Origin: Dimorphilus gyrociliatus
Taxonomy: Eukaryota > Animalia > Annelida
Direction: 5' to 3'
NCBI GenBank assembly: GCA_904063045.1
Contig: CAJFCJ010000008.1
Span: forward strand, 1,240,001-1,304,000
Length of the DNA: 64,000 bases
The notes under the pieces were generated by a model. It saw only the letters and a list, made by a program, of their open reading frames with translations, ran no database searches and was not told the DNA's origin. The position numbers and the translations under genes are program-made. Positions within the stretch are counted from its first letter, which is position 1; each line of letters starts with the position of its first letter. Positions 19,301-64,000 of the stretch are shown here, one piece after another.

Positions 19301-21141
19301 GCCCGCTATTTATAAATCGTCCTGTGTAATAGACATAACCTACTTCCCATTCGATAGACAAACTTGTTGGATGAAATTCGGAAGTTGGACATATGACGGT
19401 TGGAAATTAAATATATCGTTCTATAGTGATTTGGATGAAATCGATTTGAACGATTATATACCGTCCAATGAATGGGATGTTTTGAGCCACCGTGCCAAAA
19501 GAAATGTTCGTTATTATCCGTGTTGTAAAGAACCGTATCCGGATTTAACGTTCATTATGGAACTTCAAAGAAAAGTGGCGTTTTATAATTACATTCTAAT
19601 TTTACCCTGCGTACTGTTATCAACACTTACTCTCGTCCTATTTTGGTTACCGCCAGAATCCCCTGCTAAAATGGTGCTGGGTAAGTTTTGTTATATGAGT
19701 AGCCGAAGTAAGGCTTTGATAAGAAATAATATACAAACCATTCGGCTCTAATCTGTCATCAAAACTAATTGATTGTTTGTTTTCTAATTAATATGGCGAG
19801 AATTTTTTTTAAAGGTATGAACATATTCGTTGCATTCTTCGTCCTGCTTTTACTGTTAGCAGAATCTACTCCTCCAGCTGCTTCTTCCATTCCACTTATA
19901 GGTATGATAATTTTGTTGTATCTACAAACGCAAAAAAGCATAGGCAAACAGTGAACACGCAAGGGAAACTTTCATTCTAACGGAGTAACTTGGGGGGATT
20001 TTTGTTGCCAAATAGTTTCACAACTAATCTATTTGCAATAGAAATCTCTTAAAGTTTTTCGTTGCAGTCAGCCTGCAGGGGGATTTTTAGGGCCTTACTA
20101 ATCGTTTATACATAGTAATGTTATTAGTAGAAAGTATTTTAATTGTTTAAAACAAAAATGAAGTTGATAGGTAGATAACTACCATAAAATAATTAAATTA
20201 AAAATCTTTTAGAGTATTTCGATAAATATTCAATGCTAAGTACAAGAGACTCTCTGTGTAACATACATGATTTATGCAAAGTCTATTTACAAGACAACAT
20301 GATGTATGCACTAAATTATATAATGCATATGCAAACGAAATAAAGTAGTTTAGTATTATTTGATGTATAACCATACAAAGAACTCTAACATTAAAGTTCT
20401 TTTTCATATATGCATATTCATATTTCAATCTGCATTCTCATTACTTAAAGTATATATTTATAGTTGATCTTTTTTTCGACAGGTGCATACTACTGCCTCA
20501 ACATGATAATGATAACACTATCAACTTTCCTCTCTGTTATCGTTATAAATCTATACTTCCGAGGTGATAAACGAAACCGCGTACCGCAATGGTTAAAAAG
20601 GGTTAGAAAAAATAAATAAAGAGAACCTGAAATCATATGAACAATAAACATTCTTTTGCAGTTAATGATCGACATATTAGCGCGAATCATGTGTATGCGT
20701 GGTGAATTAGTATCGGAAGATGCACCGAAGAACCAGTCTAAGACTCCAGAAACGGTTCATACTGTTAAAATTGATAAAAAAACTAAACGAAAAGTTAAGT
20801 GTCCTGAAATGAAATATAACAAATTTCAAATGTATGAACTGAAAGAAGGATGCCCAAGTGGACTGTTGTCGAATCATAATTCAACATCAGCTCCATCTAG
20901 AGGACATTATCAAGAGCAAGATAGATCTTGTTTTCAAGGACAATCTGGTGTGGAGGCTGATGTTAAGGAAATTCGAAAGTATTTAAAACAGATGCTATAT
21001 CGAATACAGCAAAAAGAGGAAAAAGGCAAAATTGCATTGGAATGGAGGATTGTCGCCATGGTACTCGATCGGTTCTTCTTTTTTATGTACTTGATCGCTA
21101 TCGTTATTTCGTTGGTGACCATTTTCCCGAAGACTGCTTAA
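6220..21141 (+). CDS. Nicotinic acetylcholine receptor alpha subunit, anion-selective clade (paralog A), 7 coding exons, ~499 aa
   Basis: Exons: 6220-6274 (signal peptide [18 protein letters not shown]; alternative candidate 15792-15852), 17611-17804, 19000-19109, 19226-19680, 19815-19901, 20483-20601, 20662-21141. All junctions are GT-AG and phase-consistent, totalling 1500 nt. Motifs: loop [11 protein letters not shown], Cys-loop [15 protein letters not shown], loop B SWTYDG, loop [10 protein letters not shown] (vicinal Cys = alpha type), M1-M2 linker LPPESPAK, M3 [24 protein letters not shown]4 [17 protein letters not shown]. Exons 2-7 are secure; the choice of first exon is less certain. 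Confidence 0.95.
15792..15852 (+). CDS. Candidate alternative first (signal-peptide) exon of nAChR paralog A
   Basis: ATG at 15792 reads [20 protein letters not shown], then G|GTTTGT, a phase-1 donor that joins in frame to exon 17611 (…[13 protein letters not shown]). GTTTGT donors are used elsewhere in this window (nAChR B at 25194, chitinase at 41608). Confidence 0.55.
16274..16328. repeat. (CT)n microsatellite
   Basis: A near-perfect TC run in intron 1 of nAChR A. Confidence 0.95.
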
Positions 21142-24142: not shown

Positions 24143-27100
24143 TTATCCCCTGGGAAATATTGTCCCCAGTGAGATAACAATTGTTGCTAAATAAGTAAAA
24201 AAAAATACTCTATCTAAAACAAGAGCAACAAGTTTCCACTCTTTTACGGCTTTGATTTGAGCTTCTTTGTCATTTACTTTGTTCATATAGGACTTTAAAA
24301 TTCGTTTAATTTCTCTTACATCACTCTCAATGGACGAAGCTTGGGATGAGATTTGCGGATTTATTCTAGGAGTTGAGTTTCCTTTTAATGGTTCAATGTC
24401 ATTTGCTTCCATTGGAGGTGGTTGAAATTTGTTATATTTCAATTCAGGACATCTTATTCTCTTTCTTTCAGATTTTTTACCCGTTTCAACATTTATTACA
24501 TAATCAGTAGTTTTCGGTGAATCATCATTTTGAGCCAATTCATTCTTCATACATAATAACCTCCCAACATAATCAACTATGAACTGTGAAAGAAAAACAA
24601 AGATAGAAGGATTAAAAATTATTTTGCTAGATAATCAAGCTTAATGAAAAAGAAACAGGCTATAAAGCACTTTTAAGGCGTTTCGATCATATACATCTTA
24701 CAGGTACGGTTAGCATGTGTAACAGCCTAGAAGATTAAGATAAAAATAAAAGGAAATACATTTCGATTTTCTCCTTTGTCTTTTTTTTCATTAATGCGAT
24801 AGATATCTGTTTGAACTTCAATATCCTGAATGCAAATCTCAAAGAAAGAGGACAACTCTATAATGTTATTTATAACATTATACTAAGGGAACAGAGAGAT
24901 TTTCTTTTCATTCTTTGAATTTACTTACTTTTTTCAACCACTTTGGCACACGAGATTTCTTATCTCCACGAAAGTATAAATTAATTACAATTACTGACAG
25001 GAACGTTGATAAAGTAATGAGGACCATGTTTAGACAGAAATAGGCACCTGTATTGTTTAAATTTAATAGCATTATATATTTATATATTATAAGTCTTGAA
25101 GACGAATTTGTGGTTAAATTACTTCACTAACAACAGCCATTTAGATAAAAAACATGTTATGAAAGGGAATGTTGAAAGTTATTGATAAACAAACCTATTA
25201 AAGGAACAGATTTTGCAGCAGGAGGAGTTGAATCGGCAAGAAGTAAAAGTAATAGAAAGAACGCAACGAAAATATTCATTCCTGTGAAAAAACATCAAAC
25301 TTTTCGTTATTTATTACTGCAAATAAACCTATTTTCGGTATGGATTTAGAGGCTGGTGGCGTATTATTAGCCAATAGCAGTAGTAAGAAAAAGAATGCAA
25401 CAAAGATGTTCATTCCTAGAATATATTCAATAGCTAAGTATATTTAATGAAAATGTAATTTATATTAAACATTTTTTTCGCGAGAGAATTGTATTGAAAT
25501 TAGACCATAGATGGCGTAGCTGTTCCATCAATCAATTCCTACTTAAAGTCAATTCCCTAGTTTAAGTGGACTTTCAAAGAAATAAACGTTTACAAATAAA
25601 TTGTGTTAACAACTCTACAGTTATGCATATATCAATAATGGTATGTTCTATAAGTATTCACATAAGATGTAGTATAGGCTTGTCAAGGACAAAAAAAACT
25701 GGGTGGCAGAAGGGGAGGGGGAGAGAATCTAAATTTCCTTCCTCTTATAATAATAAAGAGGGAAGGGAAGGGGGAAGGAGTGAGAAATTTGATGTCCCTT
25801 TTCCATTTAAAGCAGAAAAAGAGGGAAAATGCTAAAAAAAATTCGTTGCATAGTGACAAAATAGAATAAACTACATTATTTTTTGTTGGCAACAATGTCA
25901 ACGCTGACAAGGCACAGGAACGAATCGAATTTTTTTTCTCCTTTCTAATTATTATGTAAATTAAGGAATGTAGAAGGAGCAAGAAGGCGAGTCAAGCAAT
26001 CAGTAATTAGCGCAGAAATAGGACACAATCAGGAAAGAATTTTCTGTATCGGTAATTTTCCACATTCTGCGTACACAGTACACTTTATAAGAGAGTTAGC
26101 GATATAAAATGGATGGTAATGTTTAGAAGAAACATCTATTTATACATTGAATATACTAGTCTCCATATATACCAAATTTGCATAAACGATAGTCACGAGC
26201 GAATAATCCGGCAAACCGAAGCAAACCAACAAAAATAGGCATAAATAAATTTTTGATTTAATAGAAACGTCGTGTGGTTTGTTCGATTGCCTCTGAACTA
26301 TTGCTTCTACATCTTTCGTAAGATAACTGACACCTATAAGCCCTTCCAATATGCCATTAAGGCCTAGTTAGATAGATAGTGGATTTTTGGTTTAAATCAC
26401 GTTTTTTTCCTATTAAATAATATGTTCAGAAAATAACGCCCTTTCAAGATATATGATAGATAAGACAATACAAAAACACAAGAGGAAACATGGCTTTCCG
26501 GATAAATCCTTGATCTTTTAATAATCAACCTTGATGGAACGCTACCCAATCTAAAAGATTCATTTTTCAATATAAAACCCTCTCGTAATATTCTCACCTA
26601 GAATCATTTTCGCGGGAGATTCTGGAGGCAGCCAGAAAATAACGAGAGTTAAAGAGGATAAAAGGACGCAAGGCAAAATTAGTATATAATTGTAGAAGGC
26701 CGATTTCCTCTTCACTCTGATATAAAACGTTAAATCTGGATACGGTTCTTCACAGCAGGGATATTTTTTGGTGTGTTTACGAGCAGGAAATCCTAATAGT
26801 TTCCATTCATTAGACTCAACATAGTCATTCGTGTCTATACTGTCTTTGTTATCGTAAAAATCTAAATCTAACTTCCAACCATCGTATGTCCAACTGCCAA
26901 ATTTTAAACTACAATTTTGTATATCAAAAGGAAAATGAGTTATGTCAATTGGACAAGTCGACTTAAAAATTGATCTTGGGATCCATAGGACAGATCCAGT
27001 ATATTGAATAACAGCTAAAGCATCTCTATGCTCTTTTAATCGCGTATCAGCACTATATTGGGAGTAGAGTTATAAATTTTTCGAAGAATATAACGAAAAA

Positions 27101-29219
27101 TTGATGCGCCTTACTAATTATATAAAACTATATCAGGAGTCCATATCTCGTCAATAGGTATACGGACTTGCTCAACATTCTCGAATTTTGTTGGATCCCA
27201 TTTCAGGAAGGCATCTGTCCATGTCTGAAAAGTTGTTGATAATGGATATATACCAAGTCATTAATATAAGTCCTCTAATTCCTTTTTCTTGATTTTATAA
27301 AAGCATATTAAAATGGATTTATATGCCCTCAATTGGAAATAGAAAGAAATGAATTAAAAACTGCTGTGGATAAAAGATAGAATAACTGCACATATAACTA
27401 TTATATAGTGCTAATCATAATCTTTATCGTTCATCTCATGATTAATATAAAATTCAGATTTCGTTTTCTCCTCTATTTTCTTGAGCTCTTTTTTCTCTTT
27501 CTCTTTTGCAACCTTCGCTAAGTAATTAGTTGAAAAAAAATACCAAACTTTTCTAGTTAGCGTTATACCATAGTAAACATACTTGAAAACCATATATTCT
27601 ACTTGTTTTATAGAAGTTACCGTTAGTTTGCAATATACTTACATATCTACTCCACACATTTGTCGTCAGCACTTGGTTCTTTTCATCCAAATCTAGAATT
27701 TGAATGAGGGCTAAGCCATAGGAGACTTTAACTGTTTCTGACGTATTTACAACGGGTCTGCCTAGTTTTCCCGTTTTTTCATAGTTACTCAATAGCCACT
27801 TTATTAATTCTTTCTCTTTTGATAGAGAAAAGTTGGAACCTGAAAGGAATATTTGGTACTTGAAAGATATTCTGACATTTCGAATAATTAATTATTTGTT
27901 GTTCCTTTGAAATATATAATTAATAAAAGCATAAAAAAATATAAGGTGCATTTATAGCATGACGTTCAATGTTAATCTACTTACTCCAGAAAGGTTCAAA
28001 AAAATAAAGTAAAAAAAAAACGCATATGATTAATTCCTCGGGCTATACTTGTCAAAACTAAGTAGAAACTCTATATCTTCTCAAAACTCTAATCTTTTAT
28101 AAACAAAGAATAAGACAAACCTTTTATACATATGAGAAAAAGGAGTAGAAAATTTAAAAACGCCATGATTCGCTTATATATATACTGTATATATACATAT
28201 ATATATATGTACTAATATATATATATATATATAGGGAGAAAGAGAGAGATAAGTTTCCATTCTATACGGTTTGCTTTCTAATACAGTCCACATGTCAGAA
28301 AACATAGCTTTGCCAAGATGCAAACTTTAGCTATTTGTTTTATCATTGGCTATAAACAGAACCACACTTTTTAAAACAGTGTTTAATAATTTGTTAGTAG
28401 TCTCATTCATTGACAAATCGGTCTCAAAAAAAACTCTCAAACTTTTTCATCCGACTTAACTTCTTTTCTTTTGTCGAAAAAGATATCTTAACTACCATCT
28501 TTAGTCATCAATCTCTCTTTCTCTCTTCCTAGTCTCTCTCACTCTCTCTCTTCTTCATTTTCTCCTTATCTTCATCATTTACTTGCTAAATAATACTAGC
28601 TTCGTTTTATTTTAAAACTTTTTATTATTTCTTTTGCTTTTTAATCCTATTTGCTCTTTCATTTGAGCAACTAAAATTTCATCTATCTTAATTAATTTCA
28701 AAGAAAAATATTGGAAAAATATTTCAATTATTAATAAATTAATTATGACTCTTACTAATTGAGAGTTTTAATTGAAAAAGTATAATCTAAAATTACCATC
28801 GTGAGAAGAACCATTAAGTTATTTATAGTACGGTGCTATCATGTTATTTCAACAGTACGGAAACCTTAGGCTGACATACGAAAAAATTGCTTCCACCAGG
28901 ATGCATTCGTTAGCAAATATGCACTAATGATGGTTTTATTACGGATTAAAACAAAAGATACCAGCCCATTTTTTACGCCATAACGATTATACAACAAAAG
29001 AGTAAAAAGAGTAAAATAAATAATGTGAACTGAAGCATTTTGTAGGGGTTACTATTGCTTCCTCCAAGCGTGAAATGGCTTACATAGCGATAATTATATA
29101 TATATCATAGATTTATGAAAAGATATCTATAAGGTTTTTTTAATTTTCTGTTAAATTAAACTACAAAAGCAGATATTTTGCCAATAGAAGCCTATTTATA
29201 TATATATAAATGATTATAT

Positions 29220-59830: not shown

Positions 59831-61143
59831 TGAAGAAAAAGTTCAAATTTTCCACTCTCTCGAGTTCCGTCAGCCGAACGTTTAACAAATATGGATTCAT
59901 TCTTATTTTAACCAGATTGTTCTCAAAATTGATGGAACTTTCTTTTTTTTTTAAAATAAACAATTCATTTAGTTTCTAATACTGCTGATTGATTAAAGTT
60001 AAGCAAACGGAAATAGAAGTATTATATCAAAGAAAACTCTTACTCAACTATATAGTCTACTCTTAATAAGGTTTGTAAAATCTTATTCAATATCACTTCT
60101 ATCGCACCCTTTGTACTTTATTCCTTTGTTGTGGAAAGCGTTATTTAGATGATGAAAAAAGATCAGTGTTGATTCGAAATGGGCATTTTGAAGATCAATA
60201 ATTTCTCCCTTTTTCAGGAAAAGGTATATTTAGCGATTAATCGATAGCGCTATTTTTCCAAAGCTATTCATTATATTACCTTAATCGATTCAGTTACGAA
60301 TTCTCATAAGTTTTGCAAATAGTAAACTTTTTTTGCAAAGTATGTAAAAAAAATATATAAACATAGTATAAACTAAATACCCTTTTTTAAAGAACTTCAA
60401 AGTGTACAATGACGCTACATGTATAGAAAAATTATATAATACGTATAATGAGCGCATATACGATGCACCGTTATTATTACTTATTTTTATAAAAAGAGAG
60501 ATTTTAATGAAGAAATTCAATTAAAGATAAATAGACATTGTCAACCTATATTCTGCCTTTCACTATTGAAGTGAATATATATCATAGAAATAGACCAAAA
60601 TAGTTTTCCAGGGAGTTTTTGTTAAGAGAAAAAGAGAAAAATAAAGATTTTACTTAAATATTATCGAAAAAGTTACGAGGGAGAAAGAAGCAATCTCTTT
60701 AACGAATAATATAAGCAGTGAAAGAATCCTTCAATTATCTAGTTTTTATTCTCCTTTACTATAGAGAGAAAGGAAAGGGGAAAGAGGAGGAGAGAGGTTA
60801 AAAAAAGGAATGGAGGATATATAGAGAATGAGTAAATCTGCTAAGGATGAGAAATATAGGATTCTGATATATTTACTCTAAAACAAAAGCAAACAATCTT
60901 TTTTGCCTAGAACCGCAAAAGTAGGGGTTATAATAACAACTATTCCCTTCTATAATATTCGTGACATTCATTAACAATTTTTATATGCGTGAAAACGATT
61001 TCCAGTAGAAACTCAATTATCTATTACGAGAATAACCTTTTCAATAAAATGCACGGAATCGTCCCCAGCCAGAAATTGGGAATATCTTTAGTATTTACAA
61101 ACCTTTTCTTCTTTTCTATTTTCAGTTGACTTCTCTTCCTAAA

Positions 61144-62871
61144 ATGGTGGACAGTTCTACCCCAACCGTTAATTATACAAATTCAACAAGAAACAATGAT
61201 GACCTGTACTCTGTACCTGTTTCATTGATAATTTTATTATCAATTCTCTATGGTATTTTATCAATCGTTTCGGTTACTGGAAACAGTTTGGTAATTGCTG
61301 TCATAATTCGTTTGAAACACATGCGAACAGTTACGAACTTTTTAATCGGAAATTTAGCGGTTGCTGATATTCTTATAGGACTTTTGAGCATTCCATTTCA
61401 ATTCCAAGCTGCTCTACTTCAGAAATGGGATTTACCGCCTTTTTTGTGCACAGTAGCTCCTTTTGTGAAGGAGATATCAGTTACAGTCTCAATATGCACT
61501 TTAATCGTGATCAGCATCGATAGGTATTTTCAGAGATGAAATTTAGCTATAAGTTTTACCACCTATCTTGAAAAACAAGAAAAAAATCGATTGTAATTAA
61601 GCATAATTCCATATAGCGATATTTATCAGAACAGAAACTATCGAATTGATTTAATTAACTTTTTATCTCTATGGATCATAAAGGAATAATTAGCTTCATT
61701 TGTTTTCCAAGAGGAAATCAATATTTATGATTTTTTCTCTCCGATCTCAATACTTTTGTTGATTAATAGTACAAGCACGACAGACAGAACTCCAATTAGT
61801 CTAACTGTCCATTTTTCAAGTTGATCCTAATTGAGGATCAACCAGCTATCTTAATTCTTTTCTATAGGAAATAGGGTTTTTTTCTAGACTCGCTCTCTTT
61901 TTACTCGCCTGTTGTGTTGGCAAAAGCTTAAACTTAAAATGAGAACAAAAGTTTTTGTCTTTTTCAATCAATAATGATTTTATTATCATATTAAAAATAG
62001 ATACATAAAATCGTAGCCATTAAAAAGTAAACGATTCGATAATTAAACTATAAAGAATTTATCGAATTCTTCGTGTACTGTTAATTTTGAATTCTAGCAC
62101 TCTTGTTTTCAATGTAATTCTTTGACAAGCTCTCTTCTTATTTCATGACAATAATTAATATCGACAATAATTAAAATAGCAATTATAATATAGTATTGAC
62201 AATTTCCAAACAAGATAGATAACCTTAATTATTTTAATCCACTAATTGTTTGATAATAATGTTTTTATAACTAAAGAATTAGAAAATGAGGTTGAGACAT
62301 CGTTAATATTTTTAACCCTTCATTCTGCATTAGAACAAAAGCATTTACTCCTCATTTTGGAATTATTGAAATGTAAATATTTTATAAATAAAGGAAGTAC
62401 TAAAGCTTATTTCGTCTCTGAATTTTCCTTTAACAACAAACAAAAATCTCTAATATGCATATAAATATATATGTATTATTCGTATATATATATGTATATA
62501 TATAAATGTATATATGTATATATTTATATAGATACAATGCTATCATTCATCCGCTACGACCGAGATGCTCCAGAAGAGTCTCAAAAATCTGCATGTTGAT
62601 AGTTTGGATTGTTTCGATAACATGCGCCGTCCCTTGCACACTTATTTATAGATTTAAAGTTAAGGAAAACAACGCATCCATTTGCGACATTGTACTTGAT
62701 CATGGTTTAGTCAAAATCTACGTGCTTAGTTTAACTGTTGCGCAATACTTTATGCCATTGATCGTCATTTCCTTTGCCTATTTCCGGATAATGTTCAGAT
62801 TATGGAGGAGTGAAGCGCCTGGTGCTGCTGTTAATTCTCGAGATGCAATTATGCATCGGAATAAGAAAAAA
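61144..62871 (+). CDS. Rhodopsin-family neuropeptide GPCR, leucokinin/lymnokinin receptor type (5' part, TM1-ICL3; the rest lies beyond the window)
   Basis: Exons: 61144-61523 and 62532-62871 (AG|GTATTT … ATATAG|A; final donor AAA|GTAAGT). Motifs: LYSVP, IPFQFQAALLQKWDLPPFLC..APFV (leucokinin-receptor-like signature), DRY split by an intron, QYFMPL, RLWRSEAPG. I saw no TM6/TM7 exon before position 64000. An acceptor TTTTCAG ending at 61125 suggests an upstream 5' exon. Confidence 0.85.
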
Positions 62872-64000
62872 GTAAGTTGATTTGTTTTCCTTTAATATGT
62901 ATAGTATATACAGTTCATCGCCGTCTCCTTTGCTGTCGGTTTGGATTTCTGTAGGGACAATAATAGCTTCAGGCTCTTTTAGCTTGTTTTCTTTATAAAG
63001 TAACGTTTTCACATATACACAAGCACAAAAAACGATATGGGGATTTGAAAGATAAACGAATTGCTGATCATTTTCTTTGAAATAGAGTAGGTAAATATTC
63101 AAATAAATTCAGGTTTTGTTCCCAAAAAATCCTAGTAAGAAGAAAGGATATATTGCTCATAGTAGAATGTTTAGTTATTGTTATTGGCTAAAAATTACGT
63201 AAAGCCTAGTATTTTTTCCCCAGCATAAAATAAGGCTTTCTCAAAAATTAAGCGAATGGAACACCTTTAGTCTATACTATTTCATAATTCTTTTCATAAA
63301 GCATTCATTTTAGTACACCTAAGCTTTCAATGTATACTTAACGCTCAGCAGCATTTACATAGTACAATATTATAATGGACGTTTTCAACGCTTTATAAGT
63401 CGTACGAAGCGCGTTAAAAGAAGGTTTCTTTCGAGAATTTGAATAGAACATGTTAAAATAATAGCTTCTCAAAAGAGAAAGTATTAACAATTCTGTCGCA
63501 ATTTATAAATTATTTACAACAAAACTAGAATACGTATTATCTCCAGAAGCATAAAACAAGGTTAGTAGATAATTCAAGGTAAAAAGATTGCCATTAAAGG
63601 TCAAAATACTTAAAGATGGCCACCAACAGATATCACAGTTTGATAATTTGCAATGTTCTATAATATATAAAAAGTAACATTTCTGTAGTGGAATTCTTAT
63701 CAACAGAAATTTTTCCCAAATTCTTCAAATATTAATTTTTTTCATGAGGGAGATAATCAAATTTTTTGTGATAACAGATAAATTCTTTCAACATTTACTT
63801 TTCCTCTAGATATAATTTCGTTTAAAATTTATATAGCAATGATCAACTTTCCATTGATTCTGTGCATAAATAATAGTCCTTTAATTATAGAAGAGAAGAG
63901 GAAGCAAATTGTCACATATTACAAATCAGTCTAAAAAGAAACAAACAATTTCAAAGTAAAAGATTAACATTGAATATAGAATATGCGGAGGTATAAAAAT

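Follow-up and report, generated by a model that had tools for sequence, protein, structure and literature searches.

Tandem, likely alternatively used pore exons in a Pro-Ala (anion-type) nicotinic receptor gene of the annelid Dimorphilus gyrociliatus

Exons that replace each other in the mature transcript are known from alpha-tropomyosin, whose exons 2 and 3 are mutually exclusive by steric hindrance, as shown in mammals, where the minimal intron is long. Among nicotinic acetylcholine receptors (nAChRs), the insect alpha6 gene carries exons 8a, 8b and 8c, which are mutually exclusive, cover the second transmembrane helix (TM2, here M2) and were followed in use by reverse transcription PCR (RT-PCR); exon 8b, the copy used most, does not differ by a single nucleotide among Drosophila species (PMC1919356). 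In snails and flatworms, nAChRs include acetylcholine-gated chloride channels, for which a Pro-Ala motif in place of the intermediate-ring Glu is the accepted signature (PMC4055736). For the electrophysiologically tested members of this group, Lymnaea LnAChR type B and Schistosoma SmACC-1, no M2 splice variants are reported, and the word stem 'splic' is absent from the schistosome paper (PMC4055736). Likewise the main survey of lophotrochozoan nAChRs makes no mention of M2 splicing (PMC6896357), and our literature searches found no paper describing it in anionic or lophotrochozoan nAChRs. Here we analyse a 64-kb window of DNA from the tiny marine worm D. gyrociliatus (contig CAJFCJ010000008.1, positions 1,240,001 to 1,304,000; coordinates below are those of the window), in which a Pro-Ala receptor gene on the minus strand, DgyrCDS7085, carries two tandem 87-nt exons, 5a and 5b, each encoding M2.

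We consider it likely that the M2 exon was duplicated before D. gyrociliatus separated from a close relative represented by contig L002, that both copies are functional, that productive mRNAs carry either 5a or 5b, and that 5b is the ancestral copy. The pair resembles insect alpha6 exon 8 in that tandem nAChR exons replace the pore-lining helix, and in that one copy (here 5b) is far better conserved than its neighbour, even in nucleotides. It differs in that alpha6 is a cation channel of another nAChR clade, whose independent duplication is ~300 million years old, and in that alpha6 usage is known by RT-PCR while the Dimorphilus pair is known from DNA. Orthology with the alpha6 exon 8 cluster was rejected, as DgyrCDS7085 is a gene of the Pro-Ala lophotrochozoan clade.

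The M2 exon pair and its gene

DgyrCDS7085 was identified as the gene bearing the M2 exon pair by HMMER with its exon 4 and by word-indexed searches (protein P0155, for which Pfam PF02931 and PF02932 are recorded). The window is AT-rich and also holds paralog A, DgyrCDS7081 (P0170), on the plus strand and convergent with DgyrCDS7085. Both products have a Cys-loop and the two adjacent Cys residues of alpha-type subunits, and in both M2 has Pro-Ala-Lys at -2' to 0'. In DgyrCDS7085 these features lie in exon 4 (26598..27052, minus strand; placed, like exon 6 below, by mapping P0155 onto the DNA), which encodes the Cys-loop (CPIDITHFPFDIQNC, C-x13-C), loop C with the vicinal Cys-Cys of alpha-like nAChRs (YPCCEEP), M1 and the Pro-Ala-Lys start of M2, and which ends in phase 1 at a strong GTGAG donor.

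The M1-M3 region of paralog A aligns without gaps to human alpha7 and to Torpedo chains. The alignment with alpha7 fixes the prime numbering of M2, and with it the assignment of Phe versus Leu to 13' and of Asn versus Asp to 20' of the two exons, which the first-pass annotation of this DNA had made correctly. PESPAKM of DgyrCDS7085 aligns with ADSGEKI of alpha7, with Pro-Ala at -2'/-1'. Matches of the gene include a 'type B' subunit from Biomphalaria and an 'ACC subunit-1' from a trematode, and it falls in the Pro-Ala lophotrochozoan clade. We therefore read its product as an alpha-type, Pro-Ala (anion-type) nicotinic receptor subunit, predicted to be chloride-selective. With LnAChR type B and SmACC-1 it has in common the nAChR fold, Pro-Ala in place of the -1' Glu, the YxCC alpha motif and the lophotrochozoan clade, whereas those channels are known from electrophysiology and the Dimorphilus gene from its sequence.

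Exon 5a (25415-25329; F13', N20', loop ending PKIG) and exon 5b (25281-25195; L13', D20', loop ending PLIG) both lie on the minus strand, are 87 nt long and have their own AG and GT. Each is in phase 1/1 (2 nt + 28 codons + 1 nt) and spans G4' of M2 through 20' and the M2-M3 loop. They are preceded by intron 4 (25416..26597, minus strand), which measures 1182 nt by the 5a boundary used here and 1164 nt in the deposited model, separated by a 47-nt spacer (25328-25282) and followed by the M3-encoding exon 6 (24929..25047, minus strand), which would provide the common acceptor for either copy. All coordinates and translations given earlier for the two exons, with their phases, splice sites and spacing, proved exact. 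Thus the pair has the equal length, equal phase and own splice sites of tandem exons, together with coding selection on both copies (see below). A tblastn search for a third M2 copy in the 64-kb window found none: only 5a, 5b and the M2 exon of paralog A matched, the latter once (19815..19901, plus strand; V13', E20'), in agreement with the single copy stated before.

The splice signals of the two exons are unequal to those of the rest of the gene and to each other. Both donors are weak (GTTTAT for 5a and GTTTGT for 5b, both being conserved in L002), whereas the five other donors of the gene all read GTAAG or GTGAG. As for the acceptors, a long T tract precedes the AG of 5b, making it strong, while the polypyrimidine tract of 5a is poor. 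The branch point of 5b must sit within the 47-nt spacer, where TAAT, TAAC and TGAT are candidates, at most ~33 nt from the 5a donor. Of the 12 introns that the two paralogs have, the spacer is indeed the shortest, as had been noted; the 11 others range from 58 to ~1200 nt, so that the next smallest is ~58-62 nt long and not 54 nt.

Selection on both copies and age of the duplication

Within D. gyrociliatus, 5a and 5b agree at 58 of 87 nucleotides and at 22 of 28 full codons, with 15 codons differing synonymously and six non-synonymously. The differences fall on codon positions 8/2/19, a third-position excess (P=4e-4), and by the NG86 method non-synonymous divergence (dN) is 0.17 with synonymous divergence (dS) saturated. 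The comparison of dN and dS proposed in the first-pass annotation hence speaks for coding selection, and its claim of two copies under selection is upheld by these counts and by the retention of both copies in L002.

L002 is a 4.9-kb Logan contig (SRR23372229), reached via protein P0310, from a close but clearly distinct lineage: for the constitutive exons, dN is 0.048 and dS 0.68. It carries 5a and 5b with unchanged boundaries and, between them, a spacer again of 47 nt (5a at L002 2711-2797). An assembly artefact or echo, already argued against from the differing codons, was therefore rejected, as an independent assembly of a diverged relative has both copies. Moreover, the presence of both copies in L002 makes the duplication older than the split between this lineage and D. 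gyrociliatus.

Identity to L002 is 84-92% in constitutive exons and 36-53%, with indels, in ordinary introns; by comparison it is 79/87 in exon 5a, 43/47 in the spacer (its length unchanged) and 86/87 in exon 5b. Thus 5a and 5b have stayed coding across a distance at which neutral introns are scrambled. In 5a the eight changes fall on codon positions 1/1/6, a third-position bias (P=0.02; dN 0.048, dS 0.23), and alter three residues (N6'S, F13'L and N20'K), with no stop, no indel and both splice sites retained across a dS of 0.68. In 5b there is a single, synonymous change (dN 0, dS 0.05), a silence at odds with the 25% of codons changed synonymously in constitutive exons (binomial P=0.0035). 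Silent synonymous sites in 5b and a conserved spacer form a pattern typically found around regulated alternative exons. That 5a and 5b are both functional coding exons under selection is well supported by these comparisons.

The polarity of the duplication can be read from more distant genes with one M2 exon. Exon 5b is nearest to the single M2 exons of L004 (a more distant relative; 71/87 nt), of Intoshia and of paralog A, while 5a is equally distant from all three (57-58/87), and 5b is on these identities the ancestral form and 5a the derived one. In L004 only 86 nt of intron lie between exon 4 and the M2 exon, and no relic of a second copy was found there; in Intoshia, exon 4 is immediately followed by the M2 exon. 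The search of orthologous loci suggested earlier has thus found the duplication in L002 but a single M2 exon in L004 and in Intoshia, and the duplication is accordingly restricted to part of the lineage. L004 (865-4805) carries, in tandem on one strand, the ortholog of DgyrCDS7085 (gene B) and a third Pro-Ala paralog, in which M2 and M3 are fused, with no intron.

The same exon swap in molluscs and a brachiopod

We listed the members of 90% clusters and compared their M2 regions. In Mizuhopecten, Argopecten, Pecten and Ylistrum, RefSeq isoforms X1 and X2, 493 aa each, differ at five residues, all of them within 298-318, i.e. in the M2 exon only (for example XP_021367416 versus XP_021367417). 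Isoforms of Octopus bimaculoides and O. sinensis also differ in the M2 exon, with V13' versus L13' and a changed and shortened loop (XP_052824820 versus XP_052824821). In Lingula anatina, the M2 exon of isoform X2 is an upstream one with K19'-D20', whereas the other isoforms have the canonical A19'-E20' exon (XP_013418082 versus XP_013418084). At the DNA level, both M2 exons of Lingula stand in tandem in the gene, ~690 nt apart; in Argopecten irradians only 60 nt separate the two 87-nt M2 exons, which are flanked by introns of 8.3 and 6.7 kb; and in Pinctada imbricata the M2 exons are 53 nt apart, between introns of ~0.8 and ~1.2 kb. Therefore, the earlier statement that no description of such a swap was known for this clade holds for the papers we searched but not for RefSeq, where M2-swap isoforms of scallops, octopuses and Lingula are already on record.

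These genes resemble DgyrCDS7085 in that they belong to the same anion-type family and vary the same exon (G4' to the M2-M3 loop, 87 nt, phase 1/1), in a tandem layout seen in the DNA of Argopecten, Lingula and Pinctada and with a very short spacer in Argopecten and Pinctada. On the other hand, they are members of other paralog groups, their copies are more alike within a species than across species, and the Lingula spacer is of quite another length (~690 nt). The duplications in these relatives and in Dimorphilus were probably separate events, and the Dimorphilus pair is probably a new, independent case of an exon swap already present in mollusc and brachiopod RefSeq models. Between Argopecten (L006 73884-74117) and Pinctada (L007 16030-16253), 'PVLG-type' and 'PILG-type' M2 exons stand in opposite order, which in two pteriomorph bivalves suggests independent duplications, or else rearrangement or conversion within the pair.

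Across the pairs, the same places vary repeatedly: 13', the M2-M3 loop and the outer ring at 19'/20', where D becomes N or K in Dimorphilus and L002, E becomes N in Pinctada and A becomes K in Lingula. The differences between exons of the 5a and 5b types that are conserved in both D. gyrociliatus and L002 are N or K versus D at 20' and N versus S at 21'; in the loop, 5a has ASKSIPKIG and 5b AAKSVPLIG, the Leu of the alpha7 VPLIA motif becoming Lys in 5a. Of the isoform differences first proposed, those at 20' and in the loop (PKIG versus PLIG) are thus conserved, while F versus L at 13' is not a conserved isoform feature, since 5a of L002 has L13'. By what is generally known of pentameric channels, loss of the acidic outer-ring residue and gain of the loop Lys in 5a should alter anion conductance, rectification or gating, and the two isoforms would differ in outer-mouth charge and gating coupling, tuning anion conductance or kinetics.

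It is tempting, though we hold it only tentatively and with the balance against it, to see in the 87-nt M2 duplications spaced by 47-60 nt (annelid, pearl oyster, scallops) a recurrent, selected design of lophotrochozoan acetylcholine-gated chloride channels, in which the spacer would force exclusivity and the swap would reset the 19'/20' charge and the M2-M3 gating loop; a long-spacer form of it would occur in Lingula, and Octopus has the same swap by its isoform models. If so, a single gene would provide inhibitory cholinergic synapses with two settings of conductance or kinetics. Nicotinic receptors of this inhibitory, chloride-conducting kind are a lophotrochozoan speciality and have been proposed as a target for anthelmintics; if one gene yields two pore variants, distinct in outer-ring charge and gating loop, expression studies with a single cDNA miss half of the physiology.

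Two other kinds of isoform were seen among the models of this family. Models that skip M2 in frame, with PAK..LG joined to M3, occur in Aplysia (P0464), Octopus (P0501 and P0503), Haliotis (P0490) and a schistosome-like entry (P0009); they could be real dominant-negative isoforms without the pore helix, or prediction gaps. In Ruditapes philippinarum, the RefSeq isoforms P0280, P0496 and P0241 (503 aa each) differ over residues 138-286, from loop C to M1.

Probable use of one exon at a time and its possible control

Use of one M2 exon at a time appears by far the most reasonable reading of the comparative data and of the RefSeq isoforms of the same family. RNA runs were screened with 18 sampled 31-mers from 25190-25420, a range in which ~28% of all words lie within one exon. 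In metatranscriptome run X1, 11 of the 18 words were present, which exceeds what one exon can supply at ~28%, and the exon-like share of words present across the whole gene in this run (0.22) argues against DNA or unspliced RNA as their source. Most other RNA runs had five or six words, about one exon's worth, and some of these may come from relatives in which only the 5b words survive. Such word shares, which are not junction counts, give a weak hint that both exons occur in RNA, usually not together. By analogy with insect alpha6, in which exon 8b is both the best conserved and the most used copy, 5b is probably the major form.

Several observations weigh against one-at-a-time use or against its enforcement by the short spacer. 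The deposited DgyrCDS7085 model, as mapped from P0155 onto the DNA, joins 5a to 5b in tandem and splices out the 47-nt spacer, and L004 and Intoshia each make do with a single M2 exon. The protein collection searched contained no Dimorphilus transcript-derived protein with either junction; in the JGI metagenome collection, neither an exon 4/M2-exon junction pattern that fits either copy nor a 37-nt stretch inside exon 5b found a match. Neither the exon pair nor the spacer folded more stably than its shuffles (z = -1.4 and +0.4). Moreover, the median intron of D. gyrociliatus is 66 bp and short introns are reported to be efficiently spliced (PMC7854359), so that an intron of 47 nt may itself be spliceable. 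Argopecten RefSeq isoform X5 contains both M2 exons across the 60-nt spacer (X3 contains only part of one), and a short spacer therefore gives no absolute exclusion; Lingula swaps the same exon with ~690 nt between the copies.

A steric mechanism for the exclusivity is plausible, and we would put it close to, but just under, an even chance. In its favour, the spacer is exactly 47 nt long in both D. gyrociliatus and L002, and spacers of 53 and 60 nt lie between long introns in two bivalves. In such a scheme, the strong donor of exon 4 would pair with either the weak acceptor of 5a or the strong acceptor of 5b; where 5a is chosen, its weak donor could not efficiently use the 5b acceptor, the intron being 47 nt long and the branch point at most ~33 nt away, and would be joined to exon 6 instead. 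As with alpha-tropomyosin exons 2 and 3, the donor of the first exon would lie too near the branch point of the second to accommodate both small nuclear ribonucleoproteins; the difference is that the Dimorphilus genome routinely splices introns of ~60 nt, whereas the minimal intron of mammals is long. Recurrent short spacers between the long introns of bivalves offer a clean natural test of steric exclusion outside vertebrates and insects.

It is also quite possible, if not quite what we would expect, that the exons are used alternatively without steric exclusion, the choice falling to weak splice sites in competition and to trans-acting factors that bind in 5b, the spacer or intron 4, with rare double inclusion leading to a dead protein. 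A species adapted to short introns, the Argopecten isoform with both exons and the Lingula swap across ~690 nt are all in keeping with regulated competition of this kind, as are the weak donors of both alternative exons and the extreme conservation of the spacer and of synonymous sites in 5b, a hint of regulatory sequence to which factors bind. It sits less well with a spacer kept at exactly 47 nt when all other introns have indels, with the 11 other introns of the two paralogs all being longer than 47 nt, and with the position of the 53- and 60-nt spacers between long introns in two bivalves.

Candidate control elements are found in intron 4. Sliding identity, alignment and blastn revealed two single-copy islands (~26060-25840 and 25640-25500) that are 97-100% identical to L002, and two weaker ones (26300-26190 and 26560-26490). 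All four are 88-100% identical to L002 and absent from L004; the islands abound in TAATTA-like motifs, surpass the coding exons (84-92%) in conservation and may be enhancers or splicing-control elements. Rfam returned no family on 24800-26700, only two sub-threshold microRNA-like matches. A 13-nt stretch of an island (25913-25925) complementary to the 5b acceptor can be expected by chance and has no compensating change in L002. A Dscam-type competing RNA structure is not supported, since folding is at shuffle level and the inverted repeats are without covariation.

That 5a is an unused, silent relic conserved by overlapping non-coding constraint, with only 5b spliced in, strikes us as improbable. 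Such a relic would fit with intron 4 islands conserved even better than 5a, with the weaker acceptor tract and weaker donor of 5a, with the single exon's worth of words in most RNA runs and with the lack of 5a in L004. However, the changes of 5a between species favour third positions (1/1/6, P=0.02) and have introduced no stop or indel over a dS of 0.68, with the splice sites kept; the differences between 5a and 5b are likewise third-position biased; the words of run X1 exceed what one exon supplies; and RefSeq has isoforms of relatives that use the equivalent second copy. Constitutive inclusion of both exons, giving a subunit with two consecutive M2-like segments, is very unlikely indeed: the frame would be kept and both copies do appear in the DgyrCDS7085 and Pinctada FSP39_006302 models, but M3 and M4 would be inverted by the additional membrane helix, nAChRs with the usual four helices are the best matches in the PDB, the scallop RefSeq models have one M2 exon each except Argopecten X5 (both) and X3 (part of one), and the Dimorphilus model looks ab initio, because it lacks a signal peptide and uses an upstream AG whose frame is broken in L002. 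We know of no solved pentameric channel with such an extra helix.

The doubled M2 that would result from the deposited model is thus a probable annotation error. The annotation pipeline merged AUGUSTUS, EXONERATE and PASA by EvidenceModeler (PMC7854359), so the model need not rest on a transcript. By way of the upstream AG, it also adds 18 nt to 5a (25416..25433, minus strand, from the P0155 mapping), encoding AIEYIL. This extension was rejected, because a 1-nt indel in L002 between the upstream AG and the 5a AG shifts the AIEYIL frame; the 5a boundary of the first-pass annotation is therefore the conserved one. The ab initio Pinctada model FSP39_006302, which includes both copies, shows the same error as the Dimorphilus model. 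Automatic models of these genes are in this respect systematically wrong, and DgyrCDS7085 needs correcting. At its 5' end (28543-28558 and 27643-27839), the deposited model begins with a first exon of 16 nt (MKKRES). Unlike paralog A it lacks a signal peptide, and it probably misses the true first exon.

Elsewhere in the window, 61048-62877 (plus strand) holds open reading frames with features of a rhodopsin-type G-protein-coupled receptor, namely an (I)DRY-like motif and seven hydrophobic segments; these frames seem to represent a distinct gene, lying downstream of the two receptor genes.

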